The notes: generated by a model not told the origin, from the letters alone. 64,000 nucleotides of DNA from IMGVR_UViG_3300046542_000248:124001-188000; one strand, 5' to 3'; shown: positions 9,424-57,000, numbered from the stretch's first letter. Translations and numbers: made by a program.

Positions 9424-9435
9424 AACACACAGATA
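9424..9435 (+). promoter_or_regulatory. Late-type promoter AACA-N6-TA
   Basis: AACA CACAGA TA; matches the AR9 late consensus as recalled and recurs before structural genes. Confidence 0.65.
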
Positions 9436-9445
9436 ATAGACCACT

Positions 9446-10633
9446 GTGAAGGGAATGGTACAATTGTCTGATACTATTATTCTAGATAGTTTGTATAGCA
9501 AAGCAGCTACTGCTTTAAGTAATCCTGCTAATGTAATGAAATTGAAAACCTATTTGTCGAAGTACTTTGATAAGAACTCTCATATTCTTTTTTCTTTAAA
9601 TTTCACTGAACGGCTTATCGTATTTGAAGCTGATAAAGCGATTCTGTTTGAAAGTCTAGGAATCTCTGATAAGGAGATTCAAGCGGTACTAGATAAATCA
9701 CCATTTGGCAAAATCAATTGGGTATTGAATCCTACTACCGTTGCATTACTATTATGTATTCTTTATTTTGATAATAAGAAGTTAGAGAAGGATGTCGAAA
9801 TCTGTGAGATCTTCCTTACTTGCTACTTCTATTCTGTGCTACATCCTAAAATCTTTAACTATCCTCCAAACGCTGCCATCATGGAGTATACGTTAACAAA
9901 GAATCCTAATGTAACAGGAAACTTTATCTTTAAGAAGGAAGGTTCACTGTTCAATTCCTTCAAACATATGTCTAAAATCTCTCATGAGAATTATATCGTT
10001 GATCTTAAGACGTTAAAGACCGATAAGATGGTAAATGATTATGTCGGTTCTATTCGTACTCGTCTTAACTCATTGCTGAAGAATATCATGAACTATTTCC
10101 TTGAAGATCATAAAGCTGGTCATTATTTCAATAGAGAAGCTGATGTGCATGAGGATGATAAATATCGTCTTGCAGATAGCACAACTCTATTCGTTTCTAA
10201 ATTAGCTAGTAAAACCACTACTAATATCATTAGCTATCGCTTTAATAGATCTATTATTAAGCAGACAGCCAATGCTGATATCAATCTACATCCAATCACT
10301 CTTGAAAATATTCTCAATACTATTATTGAGCATTATAGACAAGATGTTGATGCGTTTGTAAGTTCCATTATTGAACTGTATGTAATTGAGGGTAACAATA
10401 ATGCTACCACTATCAATACGTCCAAGTTCATCAATGAATGTTTATACCTGTATAAATCCAATTCCAGTAAGCCACGAGTAGTTTATCTTAAAAATACTTT
10501 GGATAAGTGGATTGCTGAAGGTTCAAAATTAAATGGTCAACGCTTTATTAGAGAAGCTACTATTTACGCATATCGTAAAGCGATCTTCACCATGTTCGTA
10601 TATTCAATCAATAAAGAAAGTCAACCGTCATAA
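9446..10633 (+). CDS. Hypothetical late protein (possibly virion-associated; true start may be TTG ~9464)
   Basis: 395-aa ORF under a late promoter, co-transcribed with an RNAP beta fragment. Confidence 0.65.
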   Translation: MKGMVQLSDTIILDSLYSKAATALSNPANVMKLKTYLSKYFDKNSHILFSLNFTERLIVFEADKAILFESLGISDKEIQAVLDKSPFGKINWVLNPTTVALLLCILYFDNKKLEKDVEICEIFLTCYFYSVLHPKIFNYPPNAAIMEYTLTKNPNVTGNFIFKKEGSLFNSFKHMSKISHENYIVDLKTLKTDKMVNDYVGSIRTRLNSLLKNIMNYFLEDHKAGHYFNREADVHEDDKYRLADSTTLFVSKLASKTTTNIISYRFNRSIIKQTANADINLHPITLENILNTIIEHYRQDVDAFVSSIIELYVIEGNNNATTINTSKFINECLYLYKSNSSKPRVVYLKNTLDKWIAEGSKLNGQRFIREATIYAYRKAIFTMFVYSINKESQPS

Positions 10634-13489: not shown

Positions 13490-14674
13490 ATGTCTAACGA
13501 ATCCGCAAAACTACTCGGGCAAGAACTGAAAGAAAATATGAGCAAAATCCAAGGTAAAAATGAAGCATTACAAATGAAAATGAAAGCAAGTATTTTTGGC
13601 GTTGGTGCTGGCGGCGGTAATATCGCACATCTTATGAGCTATTTCGATGGCTATGATACAGCAGCTTTAAATACAACACAATCCGACATGGTTGGTTTGA
13701 TGGTTGATCATAGAGTGGTAATTAAAGGTGTTAATGGATCTGGTAAAGATCGTGCATTTGCATCTGATCAATTCAAACTTTCCTATAAATCATTCTTTGA
13801 ACATGACGGAATTAAGAAGCTTATCGAGAACGATTTAATTTTCGTTGTCGGTACAGGTGGTGGTGGAACTGGTACAATCATTTCCATTATGACCGCCGCT
13901 TATCTTAAGAAAGAATATCCAAATAAACAAATCTTCTTTATTGGCATGCTAGGTTCAATTAAAGAAGATAAAACATCGCAGGAAAATATGCGTGAGTTTA
14001 TGTCTGATCTTGAAAATAAACTCAGCGTTCCGTATCTTCTATTCGATAACAATCGTACGAAGAATATGGTTGGCGATCAAGTTTACGATAAAGTTAATAA
14101 CGATATCGTTGACGCAATTCGTGTTCTATCTAAAGATTTCTTCGTTGAGACATCACGGAGTAATATTGACGGTCGAGACTATGCTCGCTTAGCAAGCTAT
14201 GCTGGTTTAACATCCGTAATCAATATTCCCAATCTGAACATCAGCGTGTCGGAAGAAACAATCGACCTTACTGGTCGTATTCAGCAAGCTATTGAAGGTA
14301 GTACAAATATCATCACGGAATCTCCTGAAGCATATGGCTTCTTCATGAATGTTGATGAGGAAGTATATTCGGCTGTGGATACTACATTCCATGATGTTCA
14401 AGAAAAGATTGCTGGAAAACCTTCAAGTGGTCTAGCATTCAAACATCTTCAAAATGCAACAGGACAAGGGCCAGAATTTGCAATGATTGCAACTGGTCTA
14501 TCAGCTCCAATGCAACGCTTTAAAATGATTGATCGTCGTATTTCCGAGCTTGAACAAGTTAAAGAAAAAGAAAAGCTGCCTACAGTTGAAAGAAATTCAT
14601 CCAAACTGCAACTTGCAGGGGATGGAAACTCTAATGGGACTGGGCAAGGTTCTAATGCCTTTGACGGATTCTAA
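13490..14674 (+). CDS. FtsZ/tubulin-family GTPase (PhuZ/TubZ-like)
   Basis: GVGAGGGNIA, ALNT, GSGKD, signature GGGGTGT, FDNN, T7 loop NIDGRD. Confidence 0.9.
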   Translation: MSNESAKLLGQELKENMSKIQGKNEALQMKMKASIFGVGAGGGNIAHLMSYFDGYDTAALNTTQSDMVGLMVDHRVVIKGVNGSGKDRAFASDQFKLSYKSFFEHDGIKKLIENDLIFVVGTGGGGTGTIISIMTAAYLKKEYPNKQIFFIGMLGSIKEDKTSQENMREFMSDLENKLSVPYLLFDNNRTKNMVGDQVYDKVNNDIVDAIRVLSKDFFVETSRSNIDGRDYARLASYAGLTSVINIPNLNISVSEETIDLTGRIQQAIEGSTNIITESPEAYGFFMNVDEEVYSAVDTTFHDVQEKIAGKPSSGLAFKHLQNATGQGPEFAMIATGLSAPMQRFKMIDRRISELEQVKEKEKLPTVERNSSKLQLAGDGNSNGTGQGSNAFDGF

Positions 14675-16972: not shown

Positions 16973-16984
16973 AACACGGAATTA
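16973..16984 (+). promoter_or_regulatory. Late-type promoter AACA-N6-TA
   Basis: AACA CGGAAT TA. Confidence 0.6.
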
Positions 16985-17003: not shown

Positions 17004-18386
17004 ATGATTATTTTGGGTTTGTTTGATCTGATTGACAAACAGCGTAAGGCTGATAAGAAAGTTGACGATACAGTCGTCACTGAAATGAGTTATCCTACGG
17101 GATTTCTACCGCTTGACTATGCAAACGGTGTTCGTGTTACTTCATATGATAAAAATGACAGACCATTTGCAAAGCAAGATTTGATTGGGATTGTTGGTGG
17201 TACTTTCGTTAGTACTATTGGAATCTCAGGTACAGGTAAATCTGCATTGGCTATCGAGATGTCACTTGCTGGTGTTCATAAATTTGGTGATGTATCTGGG
17301 GTGACTCATTTTGACCTTGAATTAGCAACCACTATTCAACGCCCAATGACGATCTCCAAAATTAAGCCATCATTACTTAAAGATACTTATAAAATTTATC
17401 GTGATAGAGGGGCAGAAGATGTAGTTGACATCTTCAAAACTCATTGCGATGTAAAAGTTCAAAATAGAAAACTCTTCACATACAATACAGGCATTCGTGA
17501 TGTATTTGGTGATGAAATTCATGAACTCTATCCATCATTTGGTCTGATTGATTCCTTTGCCATGTTTAAATCAGGTGAAGTGAACTTAGATAACAAAGGT
17601 GTAGACGGAGTCACAAATAATATGCAAGCGGCTCAAGCTGCTAAATTTAACAAAGCGATTCTATCTCAAATGCTTGCTATCGGTAAGAAAGCAAACGTTG
17701 GTATTATTGCGGTTAACCATATTAACCAAGACGTAAACACTGGCTTTATGCCAAAAGCTAGTCAGCATATGTACTTGAACCAAGGTGAAACAATGCCTGG
17801 TGGTGCTGCTACATTATACTTGGCTAATAACATTATTAAATTGAAACTTCTTAAGAAATACCAGATCTCTGGTAAAACTGATGGCATGGATTATGGTATT
17901 CCTGGCTTCTTGGTTGAAGCTAAGTTTATTAAATCACGTACCAACGCTGCTAACGTTCCAGTAGAACTTGTGTTTGACCAACGTAAAGGTGGTTTCTCCA
18001 AAGTTCTTACTTTATTCCATTTTGCTGTGAAGAATGAACTTCTTCTTGGATCTAACCGTGCTCACTTCCTTCCAGGACTTGAGAGTGTTAAGTTCACTAA
18101 GAAAAACTTCAAAGATGTAGTAATGCAATCTCCTGAAATTTTGGAAGCATTATACATGGTTTGTCTGCCGTATCTTGAAGCTATGCTTTCAACTGATACA
18201 GGTCGCATGAATGCTGTAGAAACTGAATCTGAAAAAGTGGATTCCATGTTCGCGGCTCTTGAAGATCACCAACGTGATATTGAGTTCTACAAGAACCAAG
18301 GTTGGACTGAGTTCTTAAAGGCTGATAGAAAATATCACTATCAACGTAACAAATATGAACAAACTGCAAGTGGTATTTGGCACTAA
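17004..18386 (+). CDS. uvsX: RecA/UvsX-like recombinase
   Basis: YPTGFLPLD, Walker A GISGTGKS, FDLE, LIDS, VNHI, PGG, KSR. Confidence 0.85.
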   Translation: MIILGLFDLIDKQRKADKKVDDTVVTEMSYPTGFLPLDYANGVRVTSYDKNDRPFAKQDLIGIVGGTFVSTIGISGTGKSALAIEMSLAGVHKFGDVSGVTHFDLELATTIQRPMTISKIKPSLLKDTYKIYRDRGAEDVVDIFKTHCDVKVQNRKLFTYNTGIRDVFGDEIHELYPSFGLIDSFAMFKSGEVNLDNKGVDGVTNNMQAAQAAKFNKAILSQMLAIGKKANVGIIAVNHINQDVNTGFMPKASQHMYLNQGETMPGGAATLYLANNIIKLKLLKKYQISGKTDGMDYGIPGFLVEAKFIKSRTNAANVPVELVFDQRKGGFSKVLTLFHFAVKNELLLGSNRAHFLPGLESVKFTKKNFKDVVMQSPEILEALYMVCLPYLEAMLSTDTGRMNAVETESEKVDSMFAALEDHQRDIEFYKNQGWTEFLKADRKYHYQRNKYEQTASGIWH

Positions 18387-18857: not shown

Positions 18858-20936
18858 ATGCTTCAACCAGATCAAATTGAAGAACTTGACCGTATTGCTA
18901 GTGACATTAAAAATATTGACCATGCTTTAGGGAGTGGATTACTTATTCCACTTGGAAATAAAGTAAACTCTTCACGGGCTGCATTAGTATTTCAACAAAC
19001 AGGTCAGTCTAAAAATCTTGTTGAACCTGAGATTGCAAGAGTATCTACTGGATATGAGAAAGTATTCGGAGATAGATCAACTTCTTTCCATAAGACTGAG
19101 AAAGAATTTGAAGTCGTTAACAAGATTCAAAAGTTTGGTAATGACTTTGTATATGCCTTAGTCCTTAGAGAAAAAGGTACAAATTATTATGATCTTGTAC
19201 TTAGAAACGAAGTAGAATCCTTTGCTGAATCTTCCGGCGTAAAGATCAATAACACGGTTATTGACTCTATGAATATCGGAGATAAGATTAGAGAAGGTGA
19301 GATTCTACACAAATCTAATTCCTATGATGAGAATATGAATTATCGTCTAGGAATTAATGCTAAGACAATTTATATGACTGATCCTGCAATTGTAGAAGAT
19401 GGGTTTAGAACGTCTGTCCCTCTTGCATATCGTCTACGTTCCACTGATGTTATACCGTATAAAGTTCCTAAGAATACAAATGATATCTTCTTGAATCTAT
19501 ATGGGAATAGTGAAGTATACAAAACGTTCCCAGATATTGGTGAGAAGGTAAAGAATAAGGTTCTATGTGGAAAGCGCAGAATTGATTATAATAATGCACA
19601 GTATATGCTTAAGAGTAAGAATCTCCGTAAAGAGATGTTTGGTGATACTCTTACGTATACTGATGGTACTGTAGTTGATATTGATATCTACTCTAATGTA
19701 CCTATTGATGATGTTCCTACCGATCGGGTAAACGAACAGACTCTTAAGTACATGAAAATGATTAGCAAATATTGGCATGAACTAAGAAAAGTTCTTGGTC
19801 GTATTGTCGATAATCCTGAGAATGAATATTCAGACCAAGTTGGTATTACTTATGCTCGGGCTAAAGATGTCTTGAGTATTGGTAAGACTACTAAGTGGGA
19901 TGATGATGGTTCTATCTTTGATAATATGATCATGTATTTTACAGTGGTCAATACTAAGAAAGCTGTTATCGGTACGAAACTTGTAGGACGCCATGGTAAT
20001 AAAGGCGTAATCTCCGAAATTGTTGAAGAGAAGTATATGCCACGAAGTGAAGATGGTGAATATGCTGAAATCATCTTTAGTGCTCTTTCAGTTATTGGTC
20101 GTCTGAATCCTTCACAGCTATATGAGCTTGAGCTTAACTGGATTGTGGATGAGATTCTTAATGGTAATGTCTCGCAGAAGAAGAAGTTCGATACACTGCT
20201 TGACTTCCTATCCATCTGTAACCCAAATCAAGAAAAAGTAGTGCGTGAACTATATGATTCTCTTGATAAAGCTGAAAAAGAAGTATTTATGAGTCAACTT
20301 ACAACTGAGTTCGTTACATTCCAACCGCCTAGTATGTCGATTAGCTTTGACAACTATGCTAAACTGGTTGAGAAGGTTGAACCTAAGAAGAAACGCTTTA
20401 CAGTTATGGATGAAAAAGGACAAGTCTTTAACATCCAAAACAAACTGATTATGTCTGATTCATATATCTACAAACTGAAACATGAACCGATTACAAAGTT
20501 CTCTGTACGTTCTAAAGGTACTATTAATCCACGTACATTCCTTCCGATTAAATCGCATGCATATAGCAGAGGAACAGCTCTGTTTAATAACCAAGCGATT
20601 CGGATTGGTAATATGGAAATGGATATCCTCAATCTGTGTAACGATCCTGCGGCTATTAACTACTTTACACGATTGTATTGTACATCCGTAATTGGTCGTC
20701 GTGAATTTGCACAGCTACTTGATACAAACATCTTCCAAGATGAAATGGAAATCGAGATGAACAACTCAACTTCTCGTGTAGTAGATCTATTCAACTCTAC
20801 TTTCATGGTATGTGGTATGGGACTACGTTTCGAATATCCAGATAAGAAAGTAAATGACATCTTCCTTGAAGAGATTAAGAACATGGAAAGCAAACATGTA
20901 AAAGTTGTCTTTGCCGGATGGGATAAGTTTAAATAA
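18858..20936 (+). CDS. RNA polymerase beta C-terminal half, probable non-virion RNAP subunit
   Basis: NSSRA, EDG, GTKLVGRHGNKGVIS, MP, GRLNPSQLYE, YIYKLKH, RIGNME. Confidence 0.93.
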   Translation: MLQPDQIEELDRIASDIKNIDHALGSGLLIPLGNKVNSSRAALVFQQTGQSKNLVEPEIARVSTGYEKVFGDRSTSFHKTEKEFEVVNKIQKFGNDFVYALVLREKGTNYYDLVLRNEVESFAESSGVKINNTVIDSMNIGDKIREGEILHKSNSYDENMNYRLGINAKTIYMTDPAIVEDGFRTSVPLAYRLRSTDVIPYKVPKNTNDIFLNLYGNSEVYKTFPDIGEKVKNKVLCGKRRIDYNNAQYMLKSKNLRKEMFGDTLTYTDGTVVDIDIYSNVPIDDVPTDRVNEQTLKYMKMISKYWHELRKVLGRIVDNPENEYSDQVGITYARAKDVLSIGKTTKWDDDGSIFDNMIMYFTVVNTKKAVIGTKLVGRHGNKGVISEIVEEKYMPRSEDGEYAEIIFSALSVIGRLNPSQLYELELNWIVDEILNGNVSQKKKFDTLLDFLSICNPNQEKVVRELYDSLDKAEKEVFMSQLTTEFVTFQPPSMSISFDNYAKLVEKVEPKKKRFTVMDEKGQVFNIQNKLIMSDSYIYKLKHEPITKFSVRSKGTINPRTFLPIKSHAYSRGTALFNNQAIRIGNMEMDILNLCNDPAAINYFTRLYCTSVIGRREFAQLLDTNIFQDEMEIEMNNSTSRVVDLFNSTFMVCGMGLRFEYPDKKVNDIFLEEIKNMESKHVKVVFAGWDKFK

Positions 20937-26132: not shown

Positions 26133-28004
26133 ATGAATTATCTAAGCCAGATGGTCGCTAAAATGTCTGACACCATGGTTGATGGTATTAATGAAGATCT
26201 GTTTGACCGCCGGAAAGGGAAACAAATCTGGGAATTTATCGCTGAAGATTTAAGATCAGTAGAAATGTTACCTGATATATTCCTGAAGAATGTTCAATAT
26301 ATAAAGGACCCGTCTAAACTTGATGTTCGTTTGAACCTGAAGAATATTAAGAATAAGAAGATTCTCAAGAATAAAATTGAGAAGCTTATTCCAGTACAGC
26401 CTGATGTATTCGATGCTATTCGATTTACTGTGGATATTGCCGGTGGTCAGAAAGTAGAGAATACTATTCTGCTTCCGAAATATATAGATAGATACAACTT
26501 CATGATCTCTGGGAATAAAACTTTAGCTATGTTCCAGGTTGTAGATAACGCAACTTACAACCGCAAAGGTGAAGTAATCCTTAAATCCAGAATCCAGAAA
26601 CGTCTTAGCAGAGAAGAGAAGAAAAAGAAATATGAGCTTCTCTGTGTTGAGACAGGCAACCTTTACAAGATCAGTAATTTAAATATCAATCTATTCAAGA
26701 AGACTTTCAATCCGTTATACTACTTTGCGGCTAGAAGATCTATTCTTGGAACGATTGATTTCTTTGGATATACAAAGTTTCTTAATCTAGTTACAGAAGT
26801 TAAGCAGCCTGAATTGTTCTATTACTTCCGTATCAATTCTAACATTCTTTTCGAGTGTGAAAAGACGTTGTTTGATGATGACGGATTCTTTAGAACTTTC
26901 ACAGGATTACTTGCTCAGCTATTCAATACTCGTAACAAGATTGAAGATATTTATGAAGAAGAACTTTGGGTCAAGAAACTTGGCACGCTATTCACATCAG
27001 CGGCTAAGAATCAATTGAACAAAGGTTACGATGTTATGAAGTCATTCCGAAACGTTCTGGACACCACAACTCAGAATGCTTTACGGATTGATTACAAAGA
27101 CAAAGCTGATATCTACTGTGTATTACGGTGGATGATGCGAGAGTTCAATGAGTTGAGAAATATGGATAACAACTCCTTGGCTAATAAACGTATTCGTACT
27201 AATGAATATATTGCTGCATACTTTGCACGGTATTGGAAAGATAAAGTTAACTACGCTTTGAATCTGAAGCCGTATGATAAAGACAAGCTTGCACGGATCT
27301 TCAAGGTTGATGAGCACATTCTTATCAAAGCCTTGTTCCGTGGTAAGAAGCCATCTCCACTATTCCGTTACAATATTGATATCAATGATCTTCAAGCATT
27401 GAACGGATTGAAATTCTCACTCACAGGTATTCAAGGTCTGCCATCCGATAAAGTTAAGGATGAACAACGGGATATCTATCCGAGTCATCTTGGACGGTTC
27501 GAGCTTAATGCTATCTCGTCCAGTTCACCAGGTATCTCCGGTATGCTTACTCCATTCTGTAAGATTTATGATGGAGGATACTTCGGAGATTCTCAAGCAA
27601 TCGAGAAGCCTTATATCAAGAAGCTTCGTAAGAGAATCAAAGAGATTAAAACTAATGAGGGTGTATATAATGTGATTAGAGCGCATTATAAAACTCTTGA
27701 GGAAGATCATGAGAAGAGAAGATTCAATCTCAAGTATCGTGAACTTCGAAATGAACGTGGCTTTATCCAGATCGTAAGACCTAGATATATTCGTAATGAG
27801 CGAGGATATATTCGAGTTGATAAGGTGATTAATCCTGCGAGTTACAAACGTACTCCTAAAGGATATATCAAAGTCAACAGAAACTTTGTTCTATTGCGAC
27901 TTACTGCTAGTGTTAAACCTGAATTTAAACAAGGTTCGTATGTTAGAACTCCTGATGGCTATATTGGAATTACAATTAATCCAAACGGTCTATTTAAGAA
28001 ATAA
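26133..28004 (+). CDS. RNA polymerase beta N-terminal half, probable non-virion RNAP subunit, with C-terminal repeats
   Basis: LPK...FMISGN, LANKRIR, fork/Rif region RDIYPSHLGRF....SSSSPGISGMLTPF. Confidence 0.85.
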   Translation: MNYLSQMVAKMSDTMVDGINEDLFDRRKGKQIWEFIAEDLRSVEMLPDIFLKNVQYIKDPSKLDVRLNLKNIKNKKILKNKIEKLIPVQPDVFDAIRFTVDIAGGQKVENTILLPKYIDRYNFMISGNKTLAMFQVVDNATYNRKGEVILKSRIQKRLSREEKKKKYELLCVETGNLYKISNLNINLFKKTFNPLYYFAARRSILGTIDFFGYTKFLNLVTEVKQPELFYYFRINSNILFECEKTLFDDDGFFRTFTGLLAQLFNTRNKIEDIYEEELWVKKLGTLFTSAAKNQLNKGYDVMKSFRNVLDTTTQNALRIDYKDKADIYCVLRWMMREFNELRNMDNNSLANKRIRTNEYIAAYFARYWKDKVNYALNLKPYDKDKLARIFKVDEHILIKALFRGKKPSPLFRYNIDINDLQALNGLKFSLTGIQGLPSDKVKDEQRDIYPSHLGRFELNAISSSSPGISGMLTPFCKIYDGGYFGDSQAIEKPYIKKLRKRIKEIKTNEGVYNVIRAHYKTLEEDHEKRRFNLKYRELRNERGFIQIVRPRYIRNERGYIRVDKVINPASYKRTPKGYIKVNRNFVLLRLTASVKPEFKQGSYVRTPDGYIGITINPNGLFKK

Positions 28005-31003: not shown

Positions 31004-31062
31004 TAATGTAGTGTTCGACTGTAAAAAAGCTGTACAAATGTATAACTCGAAACATTTGAATA
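31004..31062. promoter_or_regulatory. Divergent pair of late promoters
   Basis: Minus strand AACA CTACAT TA (31015-31004); plus strand AACA TTTGAA TA (31051-31062). Confidence 0.7.
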
Positions 31063-31097: not shown

Positions 31098-31790
31098 ATG
31101 ATTAATGGATTCTATAATAGCAAATTACTGTCGGGTAAAAAATCACAAATGCTTCAAATGGCAGTACCTTTTAGCCATGAAGATGAATCAGAAATTGTTG
31201 CCCCTATTGATGGTGATCTTGCTCTTGAGGCAATGATCCTATCACTAACTGAGACTCTCAATGAGTATATTGAAGCAAATACTGAAATGGTTCAATTACA
31301 AGAGGGTGTTACTCAAGTAGTAAGAAAAGTTAAAGACTCTGTAGCAAAAACAGTTGTAAGATTTACACTAGCTGATAAAGAAATGTCTGAAAAAATCAAT
31401 GATAAGTTTAATAGGTACATTAAACTCTTTAGAGAAAATAAGAGAAATGCTGCTTATGATACTATCGTTAAAAGTTCTATTAATCTTTCCAGAATGCTGA
31501 AAAATCTTTTAGGGTCATTTATCCTTGGACTCTTAATTCCTGGTGGTATTCCTGTAAAGATTGTTACTGCTGTAACTGCAATCATTGTTAAAACTGCTAT
31601 GGATAAGAGAGCAGACTCTAAGTATAAGAATCTTATCTTTAATGATTTGAAATTTGAAATTCAAGTTGTTAAGGAGAAGCTTAGAGATGCTGAGACTAGA
31701 GGAGATATCAAAGCCAAGTATAAACTCTTGAGAATTGAAAATCAACTTGGTCGAGCAATGAACAGAATTCAATACAACTTGAAAGAATAA
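31098..31790 (+). CDS. Putative internal head/ejection protein
   Basis: Late promoter; N-terminal LxE motifs (ALEA, IEAN, LQEG); hydrophobic hairpin; upstream of the capsid gene. Confidence 0.55.
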   Translation: MINGFYNSKLLSGKKSQMLQMAVPFSHEDESEIVAPIDGDLALEAMILSLTETLNEYIEANTEMVQLQEGVTQVVRKVKDSVAKTVVRFTLADKEMSEKINDKFNRYIKLFRENKRNAAYDTIVKSSINLSRMLKNLLGSFILGLLIPGGIPVKIVTAVTAIIVKTAMDKRADSKYKNLIFNDLKFEIQVVKEKLRDAETRGDIKAKYKLLRIENQLGRAMNRIQYNLKE

Positions 31791-37209: not shown

Positions 37210-37250
37210 TTTATAGTTAAAACACCTGTATAATAACTTTTAACTATAAA
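37210..37250 (+). promoter_or_regulatory. Late promoter AACA CCTGTA TA within a 13-bp inverted repeat
   Basis: TTTATAGTTAAAA-N15-TTTTAACTATAAA; promoter at 37221-37232. Confidence 0.65.
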
Positions 37251-41877: not shown

Positions 41878-41889
41878 AACATTTCATTA
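41878..41889 (+). promoter_or_regulatory. Late-type promoter
   Basis: AACA TTTCAT TA. Confidence 0.65.
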
Positions 41890-42674: not shown

Positions 42675-42686
42675 AACAATCAATTA
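42675..42686 (+). promoter_or_regulatory. Late-type promoter
   Basis: AACA ATCAAT TA. Confidence 0.7.
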
Positions 42687-48545: not shown

Positions 48546-48557
48546 AACAGAGTATTA
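48546..48557 (+). promoter_or_regulatory. Late-type promoter
   Basis: AACA GAGTAT TA. Confidence 0.65.
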
Positions 48558-48591: not shown

Positions 48592-49098
48592 ATGGGAATT
48601 TTACAAGATCGTCTTAAATCATTACTTGAAAATTCGTACATTCAAGAATCTAGCAAAGAACCGGCCCCTATTGGTGAAGCTGAAGTCACTGATGAAATGA
48701 TGGCTGAAGCTACACTAGCTATGATTTTGGAAGCTACTCAAGCGTATGCTCTTGAGGAAGCTCAATTATTTATTTCCGAAAATGCACACCTTTTGGTGCG
48801 CGACGGTTTGCTCACTGAAGATGCTGCCGGTCAATCCTTCATGGTACTTTCCCGTGATGCTCAGCGTAACAAAGCAGAATCAATGCTTCGTATGCAAATG
48901 GCTCGCAAAGCCAAAGATCCACGTCAATTTAAAATTGCAGCAATGCGCCGTACTATCAAACGTCTTAGCGCTGAAATTCATAACGATTCCCGTTATAATG
49001 AAGCAAAGACTATTGTGATGAAACGTCAATTCCGGTATGCTCCAGATGCTGCTGGAATGTCGGCTAAACGTACACAAAGCCAATTCAAATTGAAATAA
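48592..49098 (+). CDS. Putative internal head protein (acidic LxE-rich N-terminus, basic C-terminus)
   Basis: LLEN, IQES, MAEA, ILEA, LEEA, LTED motifs; AAGGAGG RBS; own terminator. Confidence 0.6.
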   Translation: MGILQDRLKSLLENSYIQESSKEPAPIGEAEVTDEMMAEATLAMILEATQAYALEEAQLFISENAHLLVRDGLLTEDAAGQSFMVLSRDAQRNKAESMLRMQMARKAKDPRQFKIAAMRRTIKRLSAEIHNDSRYNEAKTIVMKRQFRYAPDAAGMSAKRTQSQFKLK

Positions 49099-49151: not shown

Positions 49152-49165
49152 AAATATATATTATT
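49152..49165 (+). promoter_or_regulatory. Early-type promoter motif
   Basis: AAATATATATTATT. Confidence 0.75.
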
Positions 49166-49219
49166 TACTTGTGCAATATATCAATTACTTATACTAGAGA
49201 TGAAGGGAAGAGTTAAAAC

Positions 49220-51337
49220 ATGGGAAACAAAAAAGAGAAAAAAGCTAGACTTAAATTGAAAAAGAAAATGAAAGAGGTAGCTAAGACCCGCTACGCTATG
49301 GGTAATTGGAAACATAGTTTGAATGAAATTGTGGCACAGCTACAAGAAGAAGGGGAATTCACATCTACTGGGGATAGAAATCGAATCTATCCTACAATTA
49401 ATGAATTCGGTACTATTGATTCATATGATTCATATATTGAAGCACTAATCACTGGCACTAAACGCCTATTGTCTGATGGTAAGGATGAACTAGCCAAACT
49501 GACAATGGCATTCAAGTTTAATTCGGATGACGAATTTGAAGAGATGAACTATGTACGTTTCCTCTTCAATATTATCATGTGGCGTCCGTTTATCGTATCT
49601 AACATTGCTGTGACTAAGAAAGATATCTTCAATGCTGAAGTATTCCACAATAAGAAATATGAGGAGTATTTCAATAACTTTGCAGATAGATTTAGAGATA
49701 GATTTACAATGCAAGAATACTCTGAGATTCTATTCGATATTCAAGTGTATATGAATAAGATCGCAGTTGAACTTGGTCCGTTATTCGGTAACTCCATCTC
49801 TATCTATGACATGGTAAAGATGGCAAAACGTAATAACGAAATCAATGCTTTAATGAATACGGAAGTAGATCTTGAAAACTTCCAAGTCAGTCAAGTAGAG
49901 GAATTCCTCATCAAACAGACTGATCGCTTCTTCCAAATCTTGATGAATGAATCGGATAAGAATAATCCTCTTAAACCATTCATTCGTGCAGGTGTAGGTG
50001 TAAACAAACGTCAAGTTCAAGAGATCTTCTTGCACTTGGGCTTTAAACCGGATTTATCAGGTTCCACTATGCCATTAACTAGTAACAGTAACTTTACTAC
50101 TTATGGCTTGAAAGATCCAAGAGCATTGTATGTGGATGCTCAAGGTGCTCGTAAAGCCGCTATCATGCAGCTCGCAGTTAGTGAGTCAGGCTATTACGGT
50201 CGCCATCAAAGTTTCGTAACTTCGAATGTCGTACTACATGAAGATCCATCGTATTCTTGCAATACGAAGAATCTGTTGAATATCAAGATCGAATCTGCAT
50301 TGGATCTTGAACTATTTGATGGACGGTTCTACAAAACTGGTGAGAAGCGTTACAAGATTCTTACACAGAAAGACACAAATCTAATTGGTGAAACTCTGGA
50401 GTTCAGAACACCACAAACTTGTGCGAATAAAGATAGTCATATCTGTAAAGTCTGCTACGGTACAATGTATAACGTAAACTACGGAATGCATGCAGGACTG
50501 TTTGCAGCAATTGATTCAAATGAAAATAAAACTCAGCGACAGCTATCTGCACGACATGCATTAGCTACAATGAGTGCCACCATTAACTTGATCGACGAGA
50601 AGATGTTCCTAATCAATCAAAATGGCTGGCTGTTTAGTCTTAATAATGATATTGATAGAAGTAAGTATTCTATCGTATTCAATGCTTCGGATGTATTCAT
50701 GGATAACCCTGAAAACTACGAGCAATATGATAATTACTACGTTAATAAACTGACGTTCAAGAATAACAAAACCGAAGAACATTTCGAAGTGTATGAGGAG
50801 CAAAATACTCATATGTATTTGAGTAAGCAACTGTACAGCACTCTTAGAGATAAGAGATTCTTCGGGTTAGATAACGATGAATCTATCTCAATCCAATTAA
50901 AGAACTTCAGCATTGATGAGCCATTCACATTCTTACGGATCTCAAATGCTGAACTTGCTAAACCGCTAAAAGAGTTGGCTGGATTCATTCAAAAAGGTAA
51001 GAAACAACTTGAAGATGTTTTCGATTACCATGAATTCACTGATAAACTGAATAAACTTTATAGATATGGGGGTATGGCAATCCCATCCGTCCATATTGAA
51101 ATGCTTCTGAGAAATCTTATTAGAAGAACTGATGATGAGTTAAAGATTCCTGATTGGGAAGTAGAACAAACTCCTGATATGTATAAGATGGTTTCACTCA
51201 ATGATTCCATCATCCTATCAAACTCTGTAACTCTTGGATTGATGTTCGAGAAAGTTCGTCGTCAACTTAAAATGCCAAGAACTTATAGAAAACGTGGAAG
51301 TTCGATCTATAGCGTACTGTTCATTAACGAGCAATAA
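49220..51337 (+). CDS. RNA polymerase beta' C-terminal half, probable non-virion RNAP subunit
   Basis: Bridge helix GARKAA.....SESGYYGR, Zn site RTPQTC...ICKVCYG, trigger loop TQRQLSARH, HIEMLLRN. Confidence 0.9.
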   Translation: MGNKKEKKARLKLKKKMKEVAKTRYAMGNWKHSLNEIVAQLQEEGEFTSTGDRNRIYPTINEFGTIDSYDSYIEALITGTKRLLSDGKDELAKLTMAFKFNSDDEFEEMNYVRFLFNIIMWRPFIVSNIAVTKKDIFNAEVFHNKKYEEYFNNFADRFRDRFTMQEYSEILFDIQVYMNKIAVELGPLFGNSISIYDMVKMAKRNNEINALMNTEVDLENFQVSQVEEFLIKQTDRFFQILMNESDKNNPLKPFIRAGVGVNKRQVQEIFLHLGFKPDLSGSTMPLTSNSNFTTYGLKDPRALYVDAQGARKAAIMQLAVSESGYYGRHQSFVTSNVVLHEDPSYSCNTKNLLNIKIESALDLELFDGRFYKTGEKRYKILTQKDTNLIGETLEFRTPQTCANKDSHICKVCYGTMYNVNYGMHAGLFAAIDSNENKTQRQLSARHALATMSATINLIDEKMFLINQNGWLFSLNNDIDRSKYSIVFNASDVFMDNPENYEQYDNYYVNKLTFKNNKTEEHFEVYEEQNTHMYLSKQLYSTLRDKRFFGLDNDESISIQLKNFSIDEPFTFLRISNAELAKPLKELAGFIQKGKKQLEDVFDYHEFTDKLNKLYRYGGMAIPSVHIEMLLRNLIRRTDDELKIPDWEVEQTPDMYKMVSLNDSIILSNSVTLGLMFEKVRRQLKMPRTYRKRGSSIYSVLFINEQ

Positions 51338-53867: not shown

Positions 53868-55073
53868 GTGAGTTATTTGCAAACTATCGTACTTGGCTCA
53901 ACACAAACTGGTCACAATATGCCTATTAATGAGGCACTGAAATTATCGTCATATGCAGCGGGAGTCTGCTATATGAAAGAGGACATTGAAGCTATTCTTA
54001 ATGAGGATATTGAAAGAACTCAAAGAAGAATAGATCAAACTCTTGGTAGCGGTCATCATTCTGTATATCAACACGTTCATTATACATTGGTATTCAAAGA
54101 TATCCCTAAAATTATTGCAATGCTTATTAACAATGAAAAACCTTATACTACTTCCGAGAAGTCTGCACGTTATACCAAAATGACGAATCTTCCGGTTGAA
54201 GAAAAAGAGCGTTATGATAACTGGTTAGGTCGATTCAAAGAAATGATCAGAGCCGAATATCCGCTGCTACTAGATACACATATCACTAAACTTGCGATGG
54301 AAAATTCTCGTTATATGATTAGCGTATTCACACCAACTACAATGGTGTATACGACTAACCTATCGCAATTGAATTACCTAATTGAAATGATGCTTAAATT
54401 TGTCCGTGAAAGTCAGGAGAAGTATGCTGATAACGGATTTGTAACAAAACTGAACAAACAGATTCTGCTGTTTGTAGAATGTCTGAAGCCATTCGAAGTT
54501 GAAGGTATGAATCGCAAGAATAAAGGTATCAGTCTTTCAATGTTCCAATTGGAAGAACCTGTTGCGATGGAGTACTACTTCGGAAATACGTATGAAACTA
54601 ATTACTGGGCAACATGGGCGCAATTTGCACAGGCTCAGCGTCATAGAACTCTCCATTACAATGTCTTTATTCCTCAATACGATGGAATGGGTCCTGGAGA
54701 TTTCCTCTATGTTCCGCCAATCATTACAAGCGATGAAATGAAACAGGATTGGATTGGGGATATGGTATCTCTTCCAAAAGATACATTCCCACAAGCCGGT
54801 AAGATTCTTGTTCAAGAACGTGGCTTATATGAGCACTTCATTCTTAAATGTCACGAAAGACTTTGCTGTCAGGCTCAAAACGAGATCATGCAGCAAACTA
54901 AAGATACGTTTGCTATGTATCTCGAAATGGCATCATCAACTCATCAAATTCATACGGACTTCCCTAATATTGATTATACTTCGTTTAAATCTAAAACGCA
55001 GTTGAAAAATATCTGGTGTGCAGGTTCTTGTAACAATTTCGGTCGCAGATATGCGTTAAATCGTAAAGCTTAA
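53868..55073 (+). CDS. thyX: FAD-dependent thymidylate synthase, two-domain ThyX/Thy1 type
   Basis: GHHSVYQH, SEKSARY, ENSRY, QAQRHRT, RLC..AQ.EI. Confidence 0.82.
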   Translation: MSYLQTIVLGSTQTGHNMPINEALKLSSYAAGVCYMKEDIEAILNEDIERTQRRIDQTLGSGHHSVYQHVHYTLVFKDIPKIIAMLINNEKPYTTSEKSARYTKMTNLPVEEKERYDNWLGRFKEMIRAEYPLLLDTHITKLAMENSRYMISVFTPTTMVYTTNLSQLNYLIEMMLKFVRESQEKYADNGFVTKLNKQILLFVECLKPFEVEGMNRKNKGISLSMFQLEEPVAMEYYFGNTYETNYWATWAQFAQAQRHRTLHYNVFIPQYDGMGPGDFLYVPPIITSDEMKQDWIGDMVSLPKDTFPQAGKILVQERGLYEHFILKCHERLCCQAQNEIMQQTKDTFAMYLEMASSTHQIHTDFPNIDYTSFKSKTQLKNIWCAGSCNNFGRRYALNRKA

Positions 55074-55378: not shown

Positions 55379-56974
55379 ATGAATAACGACATCATTGCCA
55401 ACTTCTCGCATTATGTAATTCCTAATTACAAAGAAGAAGGCACAGAAGATCAACTGACCTACTTAGAGAAGGCTTTGAGTACGTTTGATAAAAGAATCTA
55501 TCGTTATATCCCTATTGGGTATCATTACAATATGGAAACTAATGAGCTACGGATTCCAAGAGGATATCCATATCAAGATATTCTCAACTCTTTCAGATTC
55601 AAAAGAAAGATGACTGTTAATCAAAAACCGCAAGAATATGATAAGATTAAGTTAAGACTCTTTCAGAATCCTAGAGAACAGTTGCAAGTAGAAATGATGT
55701 CTTTCCTATGTGGATTAGGCAAACATGCTTACACTGCAAAATTCTCTCAGGTATTTTGTGATCTGAATACAGGTAAGGGTAAAACCTACTGTACGGTTGC
55801 ATCACTATCTTATTTCCAAGATAAAATCGTCATATTCATTCCATCTAAGCTAAGTAAGCTTATAGATCAATGGTATGACGCATTTACGGACTATACTGAT
55901 AAAAAACCTAGAGACATTCTGATTGTCCGTGGTTCTGATATGTGTGAAGATATTCATAAAGGTAAGTACGCTGATAAAGAAGTGTTTATCATTACAAAGG
56001 GAACTGCACTATCATATGCTAACACATATGGTTGGACTAAGTTCCAAGAGATGATTGCACAGACTAAAGCTGGAGTTAAGATTATTGATGAAGCTCATAT
56101 GGATATGAGATCCAATGTCTTAATTGACTGCTATTCCAATGTTAAGAAGAATATTTACCTCACAGCGTCTGCTCTTAGAGGTAATAGATTCGAGAATGAA
56201 ATCTTCAAAAAGATCTTCAGCGGTGTGCCTATATTCGGTAAAGAATTAGTCAAAGCTGAAGAGAATTATATCATTATGCTTATGTATTTCTTTAAGCATA
56301 TGCCTAATGTTAAACAAAGAGCTTCCTGTAAGATAAGAACCAATGATGGCTATGGTCTATCGGCAGTGAAGTATTCTAATTATCTTGTATCTAAAGAAGG
56401 TGCAAGACAAGAATTCTTTACAGCTATGAATAAAGCTATTAGAGATATCTTTGTGAAATACAGAAATAACTCTGGCTTTGTTAGCTTACCTAATATTGGA
56501 CCTGGTAAATATATCAGAAACTCCAATGGCAATATTCAAATCAATAGAACTGAAAAGTTCCAAGGGAAACTTCTTATCCTTGGAGCAACGATTGAATTCC
56601 TCAAAACTATACGAAAGTTCTTAGAAGTAAACTTTCCTGAATATAGCATAGGGTTATACTCTGGCGAAATTAAGGATATGAAGATAAGAGAACTTGAGTT
56701 GGAGAAAGATATTATCCTTGCCACTGAAAAAGGTATTGGGACTGGAGCAAACATTGAAGATCTTCAGTTTATGATCAATACCATTCCTTATAGCAATCCA
56801 GTGTATGCGAATCAACTACCTGGTCGTTTAAGAGAACTTAAAGGAAGAAAAGTTTACTATATGGAATTAATCAATACAGAATTTAGTGAAGCTGCTAAAC
56901 AATATGAAAGACGATCCAAATTCCTAATGGAAAAAGCTAAAAGTAATAAACTAATAACCGTGTCTGTCACCTAA
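55379..56974 (+). CDS. SF2 DExH helicase (UvsW-like)
   Basis: TGKGKT, IDEAH, LTAS, GTGANI, QLPGRLR. Confidence 0.88.
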   Translation: MNNDIIANFSHYVIPNYKEEGTEDQLTYLEKALSTFDKRIYRYIPIGYHYNMETNELRIPRGYPYQDILNSFRFKRKMTVNQKPQEYDKIKLRLFQNPREQLQVEMMSFLCGLGKHAYTAKFSQVFCDLNTGKGKTYCTVASLSYFQDKIVIFIPSKLSKLIDQWYDAFTDYTDKKPRDILIVRGSDMCEDIHKGKYADKEVFIITKGTALSYANTYGWTKFQEMIAQTKAGVKIIDEAHMDMRSNVLIDCYSNVKKNIYLTASALRGNRFENEIFKKIFSGVPIFGKELVKAEENYIIMLMYFFKHMPNVKQRASCKIRTNDGYGLSAVKYSNYLVSKEGARQEFFTAMNKAIRDIFVKYRNNSGFVSLPNIGPGKYIRNSNGNIQINRTEKFQGKLLILGATIEFLKTIRKFLEVNFPEYSIGLYSGEIKDMKIRELELEKDIILATEKGIGTGANIEDLQFMINTIPYSNPVYANQLPGRLRELKGRKVYYMELINTEFSEAAKQYERRSKFLMEKAKSNKLITVSVT

Positions 56975-56986
56975 CGTAATATGTAG

Positions 56987-57000
56987 AAATATATATTATT
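56987..57000 (+). promoter_or_regulatory. Early-type promoter motif
   Basis: AAATATATATTATT. Confidence 0.75.

Follow-up and report, generated by a model that had tools for sequence, protein, structure and literature searches.

A jumbo phage related to the uracil-DNA phage AR9 encodes a predicted tandem ThyX-family protein and most likely has thymine DNA

The Bacillus phages AR9 and PBS1 (Takahashivirus) and the other uracil-DNA jumbo phages S6, phiR1-37, LPJP1 and BpSp carry dU in place of dT, and AR9 possesses split-subunit virion and non-virion RNA polymerases (vRNAP and nvRNAP). The AR9 nvRNAP is the only known multisubunit RNAP that reads its -10 element in the template strand and requires deoxyuridine there, at late promoters with the consensus AACA-(6N)-TA/G (PMC5312081, PMC9209446). 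In its gp226 specificity subunit, the C-beta of V206 lies 3.9 Å from C5 of the -10 uracil and excludes thymine; this valine is described as absolutely conserved in dU phages, and the engineered V206G mutant recognises -10 U and -10 T equally well, although it does not relieve the U requirement at -11, where T is excluded by the conformation of the DNA backbone (Fraser et al. 2022, PMC9209446). Uracil DNA is stated to require the absence of thymidylate synthase (TS/Thy1) and of dUTPase (Iyer et al., PMC7824862), and a dCTP deaminase of the dCMP-deaminase family (PF00383) supplies dUTP in these phages (PMC12697855). Here we analysed a rhizosphere jumbo phage of 246.9 kb from soil, starting from a 64,000-nt stretch (IMGVR_UViG_3300046542_000248:124001-188000, hereafter the window). 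[quoted passage not shown]

The phage is a distant relative of the uracil-DNA group. Its major capsid protein matches only the AR9/PBS1, S6, phiR1-37, LPJP1 and BpSp group, the capsid, terminase, portal and sheath genes are shared, 53 genes are shared with AR9 in the same local order, including all RNAP pieces, and the window keeps the order of AR9 g089 to g156, but protein identity is only about 25-35%. The nvRNAP beta C-terminal subunit (18858..20936, +; homologue of AR9 g089) matches phrog_3295 at E=2e-90, with AR9 and PBS1 as the best tblastn hits at 34% identity. The beta N-terminal subunit (26133..28004, +; g105), which forms half of the -10 base pocket, matches by BLASTP at 32% identity and E=1e-47, and the beta' C-terminal subunit (49220..51337, +; g154) matches AR9 127955-129697 by tblastn at E=7e-48. 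Together with hits to g270 and g226, the split beta and beta' subunits and a gp226-like fifth subunit are thus present. In a single-gene tree of the beta C-terminal subunit, this phage and its complete relative G022 (207 kb, CheckV 100%) branch outside the uracil-DNA clade with moderate support (84/90). No genetic code other than table 11 was needed, no tRNA genes were found, and roughly 190 of the 248 ORFs have no assigned function.

Both AR9 promoter motifs are also present. The initial annotation counted about 10 copies of AACA-N6-TR. The motif AACANNNNNNTR occurs 53 times in the window against 103 +/- 9.8 in dinucleotide shuffles, so that the raw count is about two-fold below chance, and it is position that distinguishes it, with a 3-5-fold concentration in intergenic DNA upstream of genes. 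Genome-wide, 54 of 214 copies lie in the 7.2% of sequence that is intergenic, whereas the same tetramer with other spacers, or permuted tetramers, gives 11-24 intergenic copies, and 44 copies lie within 200 nt upstream of a same-strand gene; many of the intergenic copies precede structural genes. Thirteen intergenic copies are in the window and nine of them precede a same-strand gene, which fits the earlier count. AR9 analysed in the same way gives 98 intergenic copies against 18-53 for controls. Sites of the AACA-N6-TA form lie 37 nt upstream of the large terminase gene (37221..37232, +), 29 nt upstream of the tail sheath gene (42675..42686, +), and upstream of a virion protein gene homologous to AR9 g125 (41878..41889, +), the prohead protease/scaffold gene homologous to g114 (31004..31015, -), ORF 31098-31790 (31051..31062, +, back to back with the preceding site as a divergent pair), ORF 9446-10633, a homologue of g052 (9424..9435, +), the UvsX-like recombinase gene at 17004-18386 (16973..16984, +) and ORF 48592-49098 (48546..48557, +). 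The initial annotation had named transcription start mapping as a way to overturn the promoter assignment; starts at the R of TR were not measured, since no RNA run contains the sequence. An AR9-type early (virion RNAP) promoter, AAATATATATTATT-N4-TG, lies at 49153..49171 (+). It is one of 51 copies of ATATATTAT, 48 of which lie upstream of genes, and the extended consensus equals the AR9 early motif AAATATATATTAT-(6N)-G. This site heads an operon that contains nvRNAP beta'C, six small ORFs (five before ThyX and one after), ThyX and an SF2 helicase (55379..56974, +; homologue of AR9 g156, tblastn 28% identity, E=1e-47 to AR9 and PBS1), which marks the downstream edge of the ThyX slot; no other early motif and no intergenic AACA-N6-TR copy occurs between this promoter and 56991. 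AR9 g155, which occupies the corresponding position, is not a ThyX remnant, as no similarity was found at E<=10.

That the protein might not be a ThyX had been named beforehand as grounds for rejection, and the family assignment held. The open frame at 53868..55073 (+) encodes 401 aa and matches Pfam Thy1 (PF02511) in two stretches at E=4.4e-19 and 69.5 bits (cut-off 24.8), as well as the PHROG 'thymidylate synthase'. However, it scores only 43.4 bits with the NCBIfam thyX model (TIGR02170), below the equivalog cut-off of 87.9, and is therefore a member of the superfamily rather than a typical equivalog. The GTG start at 53868 has its GAGAGG ribosome site only 2 nt upstream, whereas the in-frame TTG at 53877 lies 11 nt from it and gives the N-terminus MQTIVLGST seen in homologues, so that 53877 is the more likely start. 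Megablast of the region and tblastn of ThyX against 50,697 phage records gave no match, so no annotated phage carries this form; phmmer against PDB sequences also gave nothing, and a profile of the family reached only E about 0.1 to the PBCV-1 ThyX, A674R.

The description of the enzyme as a tandem form with divided motifs is likewise correct. The N-domain (53868..54542, +; residues 1-225) has GHHSV (H63/H64), the active-site loop S96-E97-K98-S99-A100-R101-Y102 and E145-N146-x-R148, and reads NNEKPYTTSEKSARYT at residues 88-103, with NNE (88-90) in place of RHR. The C-domain (54543..55073, +; residues 226-401) reads AQAQRHRT at residues 254-261 and has Q255, R258-H259-R260, E317-R318, E330-R331 and A336-Q337-x-E339 (ERLC..AQ.EI) as well as a Cys pair, C384/C388, but lacks the Ser-x-Arg-Tyr loop and the His motif. 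The canonical signature RHR-x7-S with the Ser-x-Arg-Tyr loop in one chain segment is therefore absent: the residues are all present and invariant but split between the domains, the N-domain having NNE-x5-SEKSARY. H63-H64-S65 are invariant in the alignment of 26 family members and align with GHES of canonical ThyX in hhalign, an alignment used for this motif only because its probability is low (9.8, over 134 columns) owing to shallow alignments. Every residue class named for T. maritima ThyX TM0449 (H53, R78, E86, S88, R90, Y91; PMC11940539) has an invariant counterpart in one of the two halves, and counterparts also exist for H79, R80 and the R147-like Arg. In the AlphaFold model (pLDDT 81.4), residues 1-222 align to a whole ThyX monomer (Z 10.1, 188 residues, rmsd 3.4; VIA-align against M. 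tuberculosis ThyX, over residues 1-220), with all top fold matches being ThyX and the next non-ThyX hit at Z 3.2. The C-half folded alone (pLDDT 72.8) gives only ThyX chains as top Foldseek hits, with Z 9.8 to 3fnn (123 residues, rmsd 2.7) and 9.1 to 2af6 before a drop to Z 3.0. By sequence, the N-half alone scores 58.9 bits with Pfam Thy1, but the C-half only 15.8 bits (E=0.012, over the RHR part of the profile); hhalign found no similarity between the two halves (probability 0.6) or between the C-half and a canonical ThyX profile. An internal duplication therefore cannot be shown from sequence and rests on motifs and on predicted folds, of moderate confidence for the C-half. A symmetric homodimer is predicted with an ipSAE of 0.78 against a best control of 0.00 (a mark reached by 20 of 30 solved pairs and 1 of 23 single chains), runs agreeing in at least 96% of contacts, a partner pLDDT of 85 and an interface that includes loop residues 96-103. 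Such a dimer would contain four ThyX folds, as does the canonical homotetramer of roughly 220-aa monomers, whose four active sites each lie at the interface of three monomers, but the number of working sites is inferred only and the prediction leaves the correspondence undecided.

This long form is not restricted to the phage. About 3,450 full-length relatives were found by a word search, in at least 538 species-level genomes, among them uncultured gut Clostridia and Saccharibacteria; these cellular proteins are 41-46% identical and share the invariant residues, whereas the phage-clade proteins form the closest set (48-78% identical) and are slightly longer. Sixteen of 20 MAGs that carry the long form have no ThyA and 19 of 20 have no second Thy1 gene, although MAG completeness was not reported, so that this absence is soft evidence. 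A long ThyX also occurs in Chlamydia, which was not checked here. A literature search for a described tandem ThyX found nothing relevant, and to our knowledge no member of this family has been assayed; FAD-, NADPH- and CH2H4folate-dependent conversion of dUMP to dTMP was not measured here either. The same gene order around ThyX is found in three IMG/VR relatives.

The initial annotation had proposed a genome search for the enzymes of uracil and thymine metabolism and a comparison of the specificity-subunit pocket as tests, and both support a thymine-DNA phage. Elsewhere the genome encodes a dUTPase (genome 36692-37432; 116.7 bits against the NCBIfam dut equivalog cut-off of 103, phrog_135 at E=1e-48), in which all five catalytic motifs can be read directly, and a thymidylate kinase (genome 228409-229206; 51.6 bits, above the cut-off). 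G022 has all three genes, whereas AR9, S6, phiR1-37, LPJP1 and BpSp have no Thy1 or dUTPase match and AR9, S6 and phiR1-37 have no thymidylate kinase match. The PF00383 deaminase is present in AR9, phiR1-37 and S6 but absent here and in G022. A phmmer search with AR9 Ugi, g151 and g221 against the six-frame genome gave no hit at E<=10, so that no homologue of Ugi or of the PBS1-type dTMP phosphatase was found; inhibitors such as Ugi are small and fast-evolving, come in several unrelated folds and can escape sequence searches, which leaves the presence of an inhibitor undecided. The Ham1-like dTTPase was detected only in phiR1-37, and the NT5C Pfam profile misses even the AR9 enzyme, so that a divergent enzyme removing thymidine nucleotides is not excluded. 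The UDG and MazG families are absent from every genome tested and do not discriminate. The gp226 homologue (genome 207245-208759) matches AR9 gp226 at E=2e-23. The 2.1bis motif D-x-V-I-W-x-[YF] of AR9, BpSp, LPJP1, S6 and phiR1-37 reads D-S-G-M-W-K-R here, and Gly stands at the V206 position in this phage, in G022 and in 13 of 15 metagenomic clade members, the other two having Arg. As gp226 is only 24% identical to its AR9 counterpart, the residue equivalence rests on an alignment, although the flanking D and W are invariant. The natural substitution is accompanied by I207M and Y210R in gp226 and an apparent R363Y in the beta-N subunit, in which AR9 K375 is kept.

The two readings offered initially were a thymine-DNA relative whose specificity subunit reads T, or a ThyX repurposed to make a modified pyrimidine; this interpretation is supported, the first alternative strongly and by independent evidence, whereas nothing supports the second, even if sequence does not exclude it. 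We consider it likely that this phage is a thymine-DNA member of the AR9/PBS1-like lineage, which has not been reported in this group, and that the ORF is its working thymidylate synthase. Our data show the AR9-type transcription apparatus and promoter motifs, the position of ThyX in an early operon between nvRNAP beta'C and the helicase, the dUTPase and thymidylate kinase, and the lack of the dCTP deaminase; the pathway, the enzyme architecture and the way promoters are read are inferred. The base composition itself was not measured, as the only run containing the sequence is a rhizosphere metagenome, the probable source sample, kept as contigs, which does not distinguish U, T or a modified base. 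We propose that early after infection (i) dUTP is hydrolysed to dUMP; (ii) ThyX methylates dUMP to dTMP using methylene-tetrahydrofolate and reduced FAD; (iii) the kinase makes dTDP; and (iv) the replicated DNA carries T. In this scenario the protein is a fusion of two very diverged ThyX folds with complementary residues, the N-domain keeping the His motif and the Ser-x-Arg-Tyr loop and the C-domain keeping Gln-x-x-Arg-His-Arg and the C-terminal Arg/Gln/Glu helix, and a homodimer would imitate the usual homotetramer, probably with two composite active sites instead of four. Late transcription would still read the template strand opposite AACA, with a -10 pocket widened by the glycine such that T is accepted; the substitution opens only the -10 pocket, and the sequence does not indicate whether T is tolerated at -11. 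Given the position of the clade in the tree, thymine may be the ancestral state and the valine a later adaptation to uracil.

Other explanations appear unlikely. A modified pyrimidine instead of plain thymine, produced either by a ThyX-like enzyme transferring something other than a reduced methyl group or by further modification of dTMP/T, would be compatible with the glycine, which could make room for any C5 substituent, with the divergence of the family, with the many ORFs of unassigned function and with the existence of a ThyX-fold enzyme with another substrate, the UMP/dUMP methylase PolB, which is among the fold hits. However, all known ThyX chemistry yields a 5-methyl group, and the known thymidine hypermodifications start from 5-hmdU made by ThyA-family enzymes, of which no PF00303 homologue is present. 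No glycosyltransferase, aminotransferase or DNA-kinase module was seen, although the genome was not scanned exhaustively, the catalytic residues are invariant between the phage clade and the cellular family, that family is the only thymidylate-synthase candidate in 16 of 20 MAGs sampled, and a canonical thymidylate kinase accompanies ThyX.

Even less likely is that the phage still has uracil DNA and that ThyX, dUTPase and thymidylate kinase manipulate host pools, moonlight or are recent cargo without effect on phage DNA. Every characterised phage with this capsid, RNAP and promoter set has dU DNA, the AACA promoter, which in AR9 needs U at -11 and -10, is unchanged, and phage dUTPases are known to moonlight (PMC4231751). 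On the other hand, a dUTPase with all five motifs would destroy the dUTP needed for such DNA, the dCTP deaminase is missing from two genomes rated complete, no homologue of a thymidine-nucleotide-degrading enzyme or of Ugi was found, the U-selective valine is replaced, and the three genes are conserved across the clade, with ThyX keeping its position and having a GC content typical of the genome, so that it is not recent cargo. We regard as similarly improbable that the protein is a degenerate ThyX-fold protein with a different or no catalytic role, for example a nucleotide-binding or regulatory protein or an RNA methylase, with thymidylate coming from the host. This view draws on the loss of motifs in each domain, on the lack of profile similarity of the C-half to canonical ThyX and on the top structural match of that half, an atypical ThyX of Corynebacterium that is not required for thymidylate synthesis (3fnn/3ge9). 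The losses are complementary, though, the predicted homodimer brings the halves together, most sampled genomes with the family have no other thymidylate synthase gene, and in the phage the protein co-occurs with dUTPase and thymidylate kinase.

The phage also shares features with the phiKZ-like nucleus-forming jumbo phages (Chimalliviridae), namely thymine DNA (inferred here), two multisubunit RNAPs, a gp68/gp226-class fifth subunit and a possible PhuZ-like tubulin. The latter, at 13490-14674 of the window, matches phrog_4733 'tubulin PhuZ' at E=8e-10 but reaches only 23.2 bits with Pfam Tubulin, below the cut-off of 33, whereas the G022 homologue scores 38.4 bits, so that its assignment is not settled by these scores; none of the five uracil-DNA phages has such a protein. 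In contrast, the phrog_4795 profile, which finds phiKZ gp054 (769 bits), detected no chimallin here, in G022 or in AR9, the other uracil-DNA phages not having been examined for it, and a direct protein search was also negative. The structural genes and both promoter motifs are of the AR9 type, not the phiKZ type. It is possible, though we put this forward only tentatively, that the clade is the thymine-DNA sister lineage of all known uracil-DNA jumbo phages, already using template-strand AACA promoters read by a gp226-type subunit with an open (Gly) -10 pocket, and that uracil DNA and the uracil-only promoter lock (Gly to Val) evolved later from a thymine-reading ancestor. A PhuZ-like tubulin without detectable chimallin would then place the clade between the 'thymine plus nucleus' and 'uracil without nucleus' strategies, and its thymidylate synthase would represent an uncharacterised pseudo-tetrameric tandem class of ThyX with half the usual number of sites, the only thymidylate synthase of many uncultured gut Clostridia and Saccharibacteria.

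The uracil requirement of the AR9 nvRNAP has been proposed as the way in which these nucleus-less phages avoid transcribing host DNA (PMC7598289). A natural relative with the same promoter words but a thymine pathway and the V206G-type pocket would show that the engineered T-accepting change exists in nature, and would provide a direct comparison for how the -11 and -10 pockets evolve with genome chemistry. It would also raise the question of how a thymine-reading version of so short a promoter avoids host DNA, for which the two-fold avoidance of the motif inside the phage's own genes and the extra A at -12 are first hints. Separately, the tandem ThyX is a large, unstudied form of an antibacterial drug-target family. 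For the phages themselves, such a relative would suggest a direction for the origin of uracil DNA in this lineage.

The 246,901-bp IMG/VR virus record, of which the window covers bases 124001-188000, is rated 100% complete by CheckV, has a GC content of 35% and contains no tRNA genes. Among public sequencing runs, the region is present in only one, a rhizosphere metagenome that is probably the source sample. The 401-aa ORF at window 53868-55073 (+) matches Pfam Thy1 (PF02511) with an E value of 4.4e-19 and 69.5 bits over two matched stretches, and it also matches a PHROG annotated as thymidylate synthase. However, its score against the NCBIfam thyX model (43.4 bits) is below the equivalog cut-off of 87.9 bits. 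The GTG listed as the start codon at window 53868 is crowded by its ribosome site, GAGAGG, which lies only 2 nt away, whereas the in-frame TTG at 53877 (both within window 53868-53879) fits better, reproduces the N-terminus of the homologues and is the likelier start; a public gene call of 366 aa starts later still. The initial annotation of this ORF as a ThyX in a phage with AR9-type promoters is confirmed.

The major capsid protein retrieves only AR9/PBS1, S6, phiR1-37, LPJP1, BpSp and their close kin, at about 25% identity, and the nvRNAP beta-C subunit is closest to those of AR9 and PBS1, at 34% identity. Comparison of all ORFs with the annotated AR9 genome revealed 53 shared genes, which include every piece of both RNA polymerases, NrdIEF, the portal, terminase and sheath, and the window runs in the same order as AR9 g089 to g156. 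ThyX lies between the homologues of g154 (nvRNAP beta'C) and g156 (SF2 helicase), at the place occupied in AR9 by the unrelated g155. The order beta'C, ORF 53144, ThyX, helicase is kept in three IMG/VR relatives whose ThyX is 61-78% identical. Outside the window, a 1273-aa ORF at genome 197726-201547 matches in its C-terminal half the AR9 family-B DNA polymerase catalytic subunit g152; the polymerase seems to be fused here to a long N-terminal part, whereas AR9 has separate genes.

The literature confirms the AR9 late consensus AACA-(6N)-TA/G and the early consensus AAATATATATTAT-(6N)-G (PMC5312081). In the window, the late motif AACANNNNNNTR occurs 53 times against 103 +/- 9.8 in shuffled sequences and is thus avoided overall, being about two-fold under-represented. 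Genome-wide, 54 of 214 copies fall in the 7.2% of sequence that is intergenic, compared with 11-24 for other spacers or permuted tetramers, and 44 copies lie within 200 nt upstream of a same-strand gene, these genes including the terminase, sheath, tape-measure, prohead protease, a virion RNAP subunit and several giant structural genes. The sites show an added preference for A at -12 and for TA-A at the start. AR9 treated identically gives 98 intergenic copies, close to its 94 mapped consensus promoters, against 18-53 for controls. The AR9-type promoters proposed in the initial annotation are therefore real as a statistical and positional signal, although transcription starts, whose mapping had been named as the point on which this claim could fail, are not shown. 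In coding DNA, AACA-N6-TR occurs 160 times genome-wide against roughly 280-420 for control patterns, and this avoidance inside genes looks stronger than in AR9 (314 against about 316-510), which may reflect selection against spurious late promoters. Late-promoter-like sites also occur as back-to-back divergent pairs in short intergenic regions, some of them overlapping inverted repeats, as at window 31004-31015 (-) and 31051-31062 (+) and at genome 18322/18335, 80592/80607 and 116533/116562.

The early motif is present 51 times, with 48 copies upstream of genes and with the same spacing to a conserved G; examples are found at window 893, 3191, 12652, 13409, 18417, 21003, 21697, 24372, 49156 and 56991. 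In the form AAATATATATTATT-N4-TG it is almost letter for letter that of AR9, despite about 30% protein identity between the two phages. ThyX has no late site of its own but lies in an early operon that starts at window 49153-49171, before beta'C, and runs to the next early promoter at 56991.

The genes of nucleotide metabolism, several of which had been designated in advance as a test of the uracil-DNA question, contrast with those of the uracil-DNA phages. The phage encodes a dUTPase (genome 36692-37432), which scores above the NCBIfam dut equivalog cut-off (116.7 against 103), matches phrog_135 at E=1e-48 and shows all five motifs with an insert between motifs III and IV, as well as a thymidylate kinase (genome 228409-229206) above the Pfam cut-off. 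In contrast, neither ThyA nor any dCMP-deaminase-family protein was found. The complete relative G022 (207 kb, CheckV 100%) likewise has ThyX, dUTPase and thymidylate kinase and lacks the deaminase. The uracil-DNA phages show the opposite pattern, as AR9, S6, LPJP1, phiR1-37 and BpSp have no Thy1 and no dUTPase, and AR9, phiR1-37 and S6 have no thymidylate kinase but do have the deaminase. Li et al. 2025 (PMC12697855) showed that this deaminase is the dCTP deaminase that supplies dUTP, and that PBS1 has a dTMP phosphatase and phiR1-37 a dTTP pyrophosphatase. The Ham1-like dTTPase is found only in phiR1-37. A six-frame search of the genome for AR9's Ugi, its deoxyribonucleotidase g151 and its deaminase g221 returned no counterpart at E<=10; for the uracil-DNA glycosylase inhibitor and the thymidine-nucleotide-degrading enzymes, this absence of detectable homologues does not settle whether a divergent protein is encoded. 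A macro-domain protein (PF01661, E=1.4e-9; genome 29685-30434, outside the window; positions 9685-10431 of locus L008) lies just upstream of the NrdI-NrdE-NrdF genes, at the place where AR9 has its dCTP deaminase. Two P-loop NTPase/kinase-like ORFs are also located outside the window, at genome 245204-246706 and 5725-6288; the 187-aa one is 46% identical to AR9 g174 and could be a nucleotide kinase, and the 500-aa one has weak STAND-NTPase matches. Iyer et al. 2021 (PMC7824862) list the absence of TS/Thy1 and of dUTPase as the genomic requirement for uracil DNA. By that criterion, and by the complementary gene pattern, this clade makes dTTP and does not build up dUTP.

Comparison of the specificity-subunit pocket, likewise proposed beforehand as a check, was based on the findings of Fraser et al. 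2022 (PMC9209446), who reported that the -10 uracil sits in a pocket between the gp226 2.1bis helix and beta-N gp105, that its C5 atom is 3.9 A from the C-beta of V206, that V206G lets the enzyme use -10 T as well as -10 U, and that the valine is absolutely conserved in gp226 homologues of uracil-DNA phages. The gp226 homologue described here (genome 207245-208759) is preceded by an early promoter, lies next to the g227 homologue as in AR9, and matches AR9 gp226 at E=2e-23 and 24% identity. In a MAFFT alignment, the motif is D-x-V-I-W-x-[YF] in AR9, BpSp, LPJP1, S6 and phiR1-37 but reads T-D-S-G-M-W-K-R in this phage and in G022, and the flanking D and W are invariant across all seven sequences. 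V206 is therefore replaced by Gly, I207 by Met and Y210 by Arg. Of 15 further metagenomic members of the clade (50-91% identical, several on contigs of 200-258 kb), 13 have Gly and two have Arg, while two distant homologues have Ser or Thr. ThyX homologues and gp226 homologues occur on contigs of identical size (210,198 bp and 136,710 bp), which points to co-occurrence in at least four genomes. In beta-N (window 26133-28004), AR9 K375 is kept and R363, the residue that stacks on the -10 base, aligns with Tyr; together with the Arg at the position of gp226 Y210, which stacks on -9 G in AR9, this is an apparent reciprocal change in the -10/-9 pocket, although it is tentative at 24-32% identity. 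In AR9, T at -11 is excluded by the DNA backbone conformation rather than by a side chain. Sequence cannot tell how this enzyme deals with -11. Within this limit, the Gly at the V206 position is the strongest single piece of evidence that the promoter is read with T.

A word search identified about 3,450 full-length relatives of the tandem ThyX, of 380-400 aa. Beyond the phage clade they are 41-46% identical and come mostly from uncultured gut Clostridia and some Saccharibacteria, in at least 538 species-level genomes. The 380-aa form is widespread in small-genome MAGs of these groups: of 20 such genomes, 16 have no ThyA and 19 have no Thy1 gene other than the long one, and in 16 of the 20 it is the only ThyA/Thy1 candidate, but genome completeness was not reported, which makes this soft evidence. 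One MAG (G009) has the long form, a canonical ThyX and ThyA together, and close relatives of its canonical short ThyX sit on many contigs of 222-227 kb, a uniform size that suggests another jumbo-phage or megaplasmid group. In a 26-sequence alignment, the invariant residues fall into two sets: H63-H64-S65, N88-N89-E90, S96-E97-K98-S99, R101-Y102, E145-N146 and R148 in the N-half, and Q255, R258-H259-R260, P308-Q309, E317-R318, E330-R331, A336-Q337, E339, C384 and C388 in the C-half. By motif inspection against T. maritima ThyX (roles from PMC11940539), the N-half keeps the counterparts of H53, E86, S88, R90 and Y91 and the C-half keeps R78-H79-R80; that the C-half also keeps the C-terminal Arg and Gln-x-Glu helix is our reading of the motifs and not a computed alignment.

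The AlphaFold model (pLDDT 81.4, pTM 0.83) shows two domains, of which residues 1-222 superpose on whole ThyX monomers (Z 10.1). The C-half folded alone (pLDDT 72.8) does the same (Z 9.8), with 47 ThyX-family entries followed by a drop to Z 3.0, whereas sequence profiles do not link the halves to each other. A homodimer model passes its controls, with an ipSAE of 0.78 against a best control of 0.00, a mark that was reached by 20 of 30 solved pairs and by 1 of 23 single chains; as our own alignment was used, those counts hold only roughly. The runs agree in at least 96% of contacts, pLDDT is 85, and the symmetric interface includes the active-site loop, residues 96-103. We infer a pseudo-tetramer whose active sites are assembled from an N-domain loop and a C-domain RHR, probably with two sites per dimer, the number of working sites not being settled by the model. 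The description of a tandem enzyme with the SEKSARY loop in one domain and RHR in the other is thus right. In addition, this form is not peculiar to the phage but belongs to a large cellular family that, as far as we could find in the literature, has not been studied.

Taken together, the best explanation, which we hold with good though not full confidence, is a thymine-DNA sister clade of the uracil-DNA jumbo phages, with a natural V206G-type pocket and a working tandem ThyX. The gene content, the placement of the promoter motifs and the aligned residues are what the analysis shows, whereas thymine in the DNA, the activity of the enzyme and the reading of T at the promoter are inferred. Nothing in this analysis measures the bases, the enzyme activity or the transcription starts. 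Of the two alternatives offered in the initial annotation, a thymine-DNA relative whose specificity subunit reads T is supported. The other, a ThyX repurposed to make a modified pyrimidine, is considered unlikely, and a ThyX-fold protein that is inactive or acts differently, or the retention of uracil DNA, are considered less likely still.

A maximum-likelihood tree of the nvRNAP beta-C subunit (LG+C20, nine sequences) groups this phage and G022 with 100/100 support and places them outside a group of AR9, phiR1-37, LPJP1 and S6, which has 84/90 support. PhiEaH1 and Pseudomonas phage D6 lie beyond, and Fusobacterium phage JD-Fnp1 is on a long, unplaced branch. BpSp was left out because its gene is split, and phiKZ because only a fragment matched; the root is at the midpoint, for drawing only. 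This one-gene result with moderate support suggests, but does not show, that thymine is ancestral and uracil derived.

Window 13490-14674 (+) encodes a tubulin-like protein that matches phrog_4733 'tubulin PhuZ' at E=8e-10. Its Pfam Tubulin score of 23.2 bits is below the cut-off, while the G022 homologue scores 38.4 bits, above it, which leaves the assignment as PhuZ undecided for this phage. None of AR9, S6, LPJP1, phiR1-37 and BpSp has such a gene, and the chimallin profile that finds phiKZ gp054 finds nothing here. The field's working division is between thymine DNA with a nucleus and PhuZ on the one hand and uracil DNA without them on the other (PMC7598289), and this clade does not fit either side neatly.
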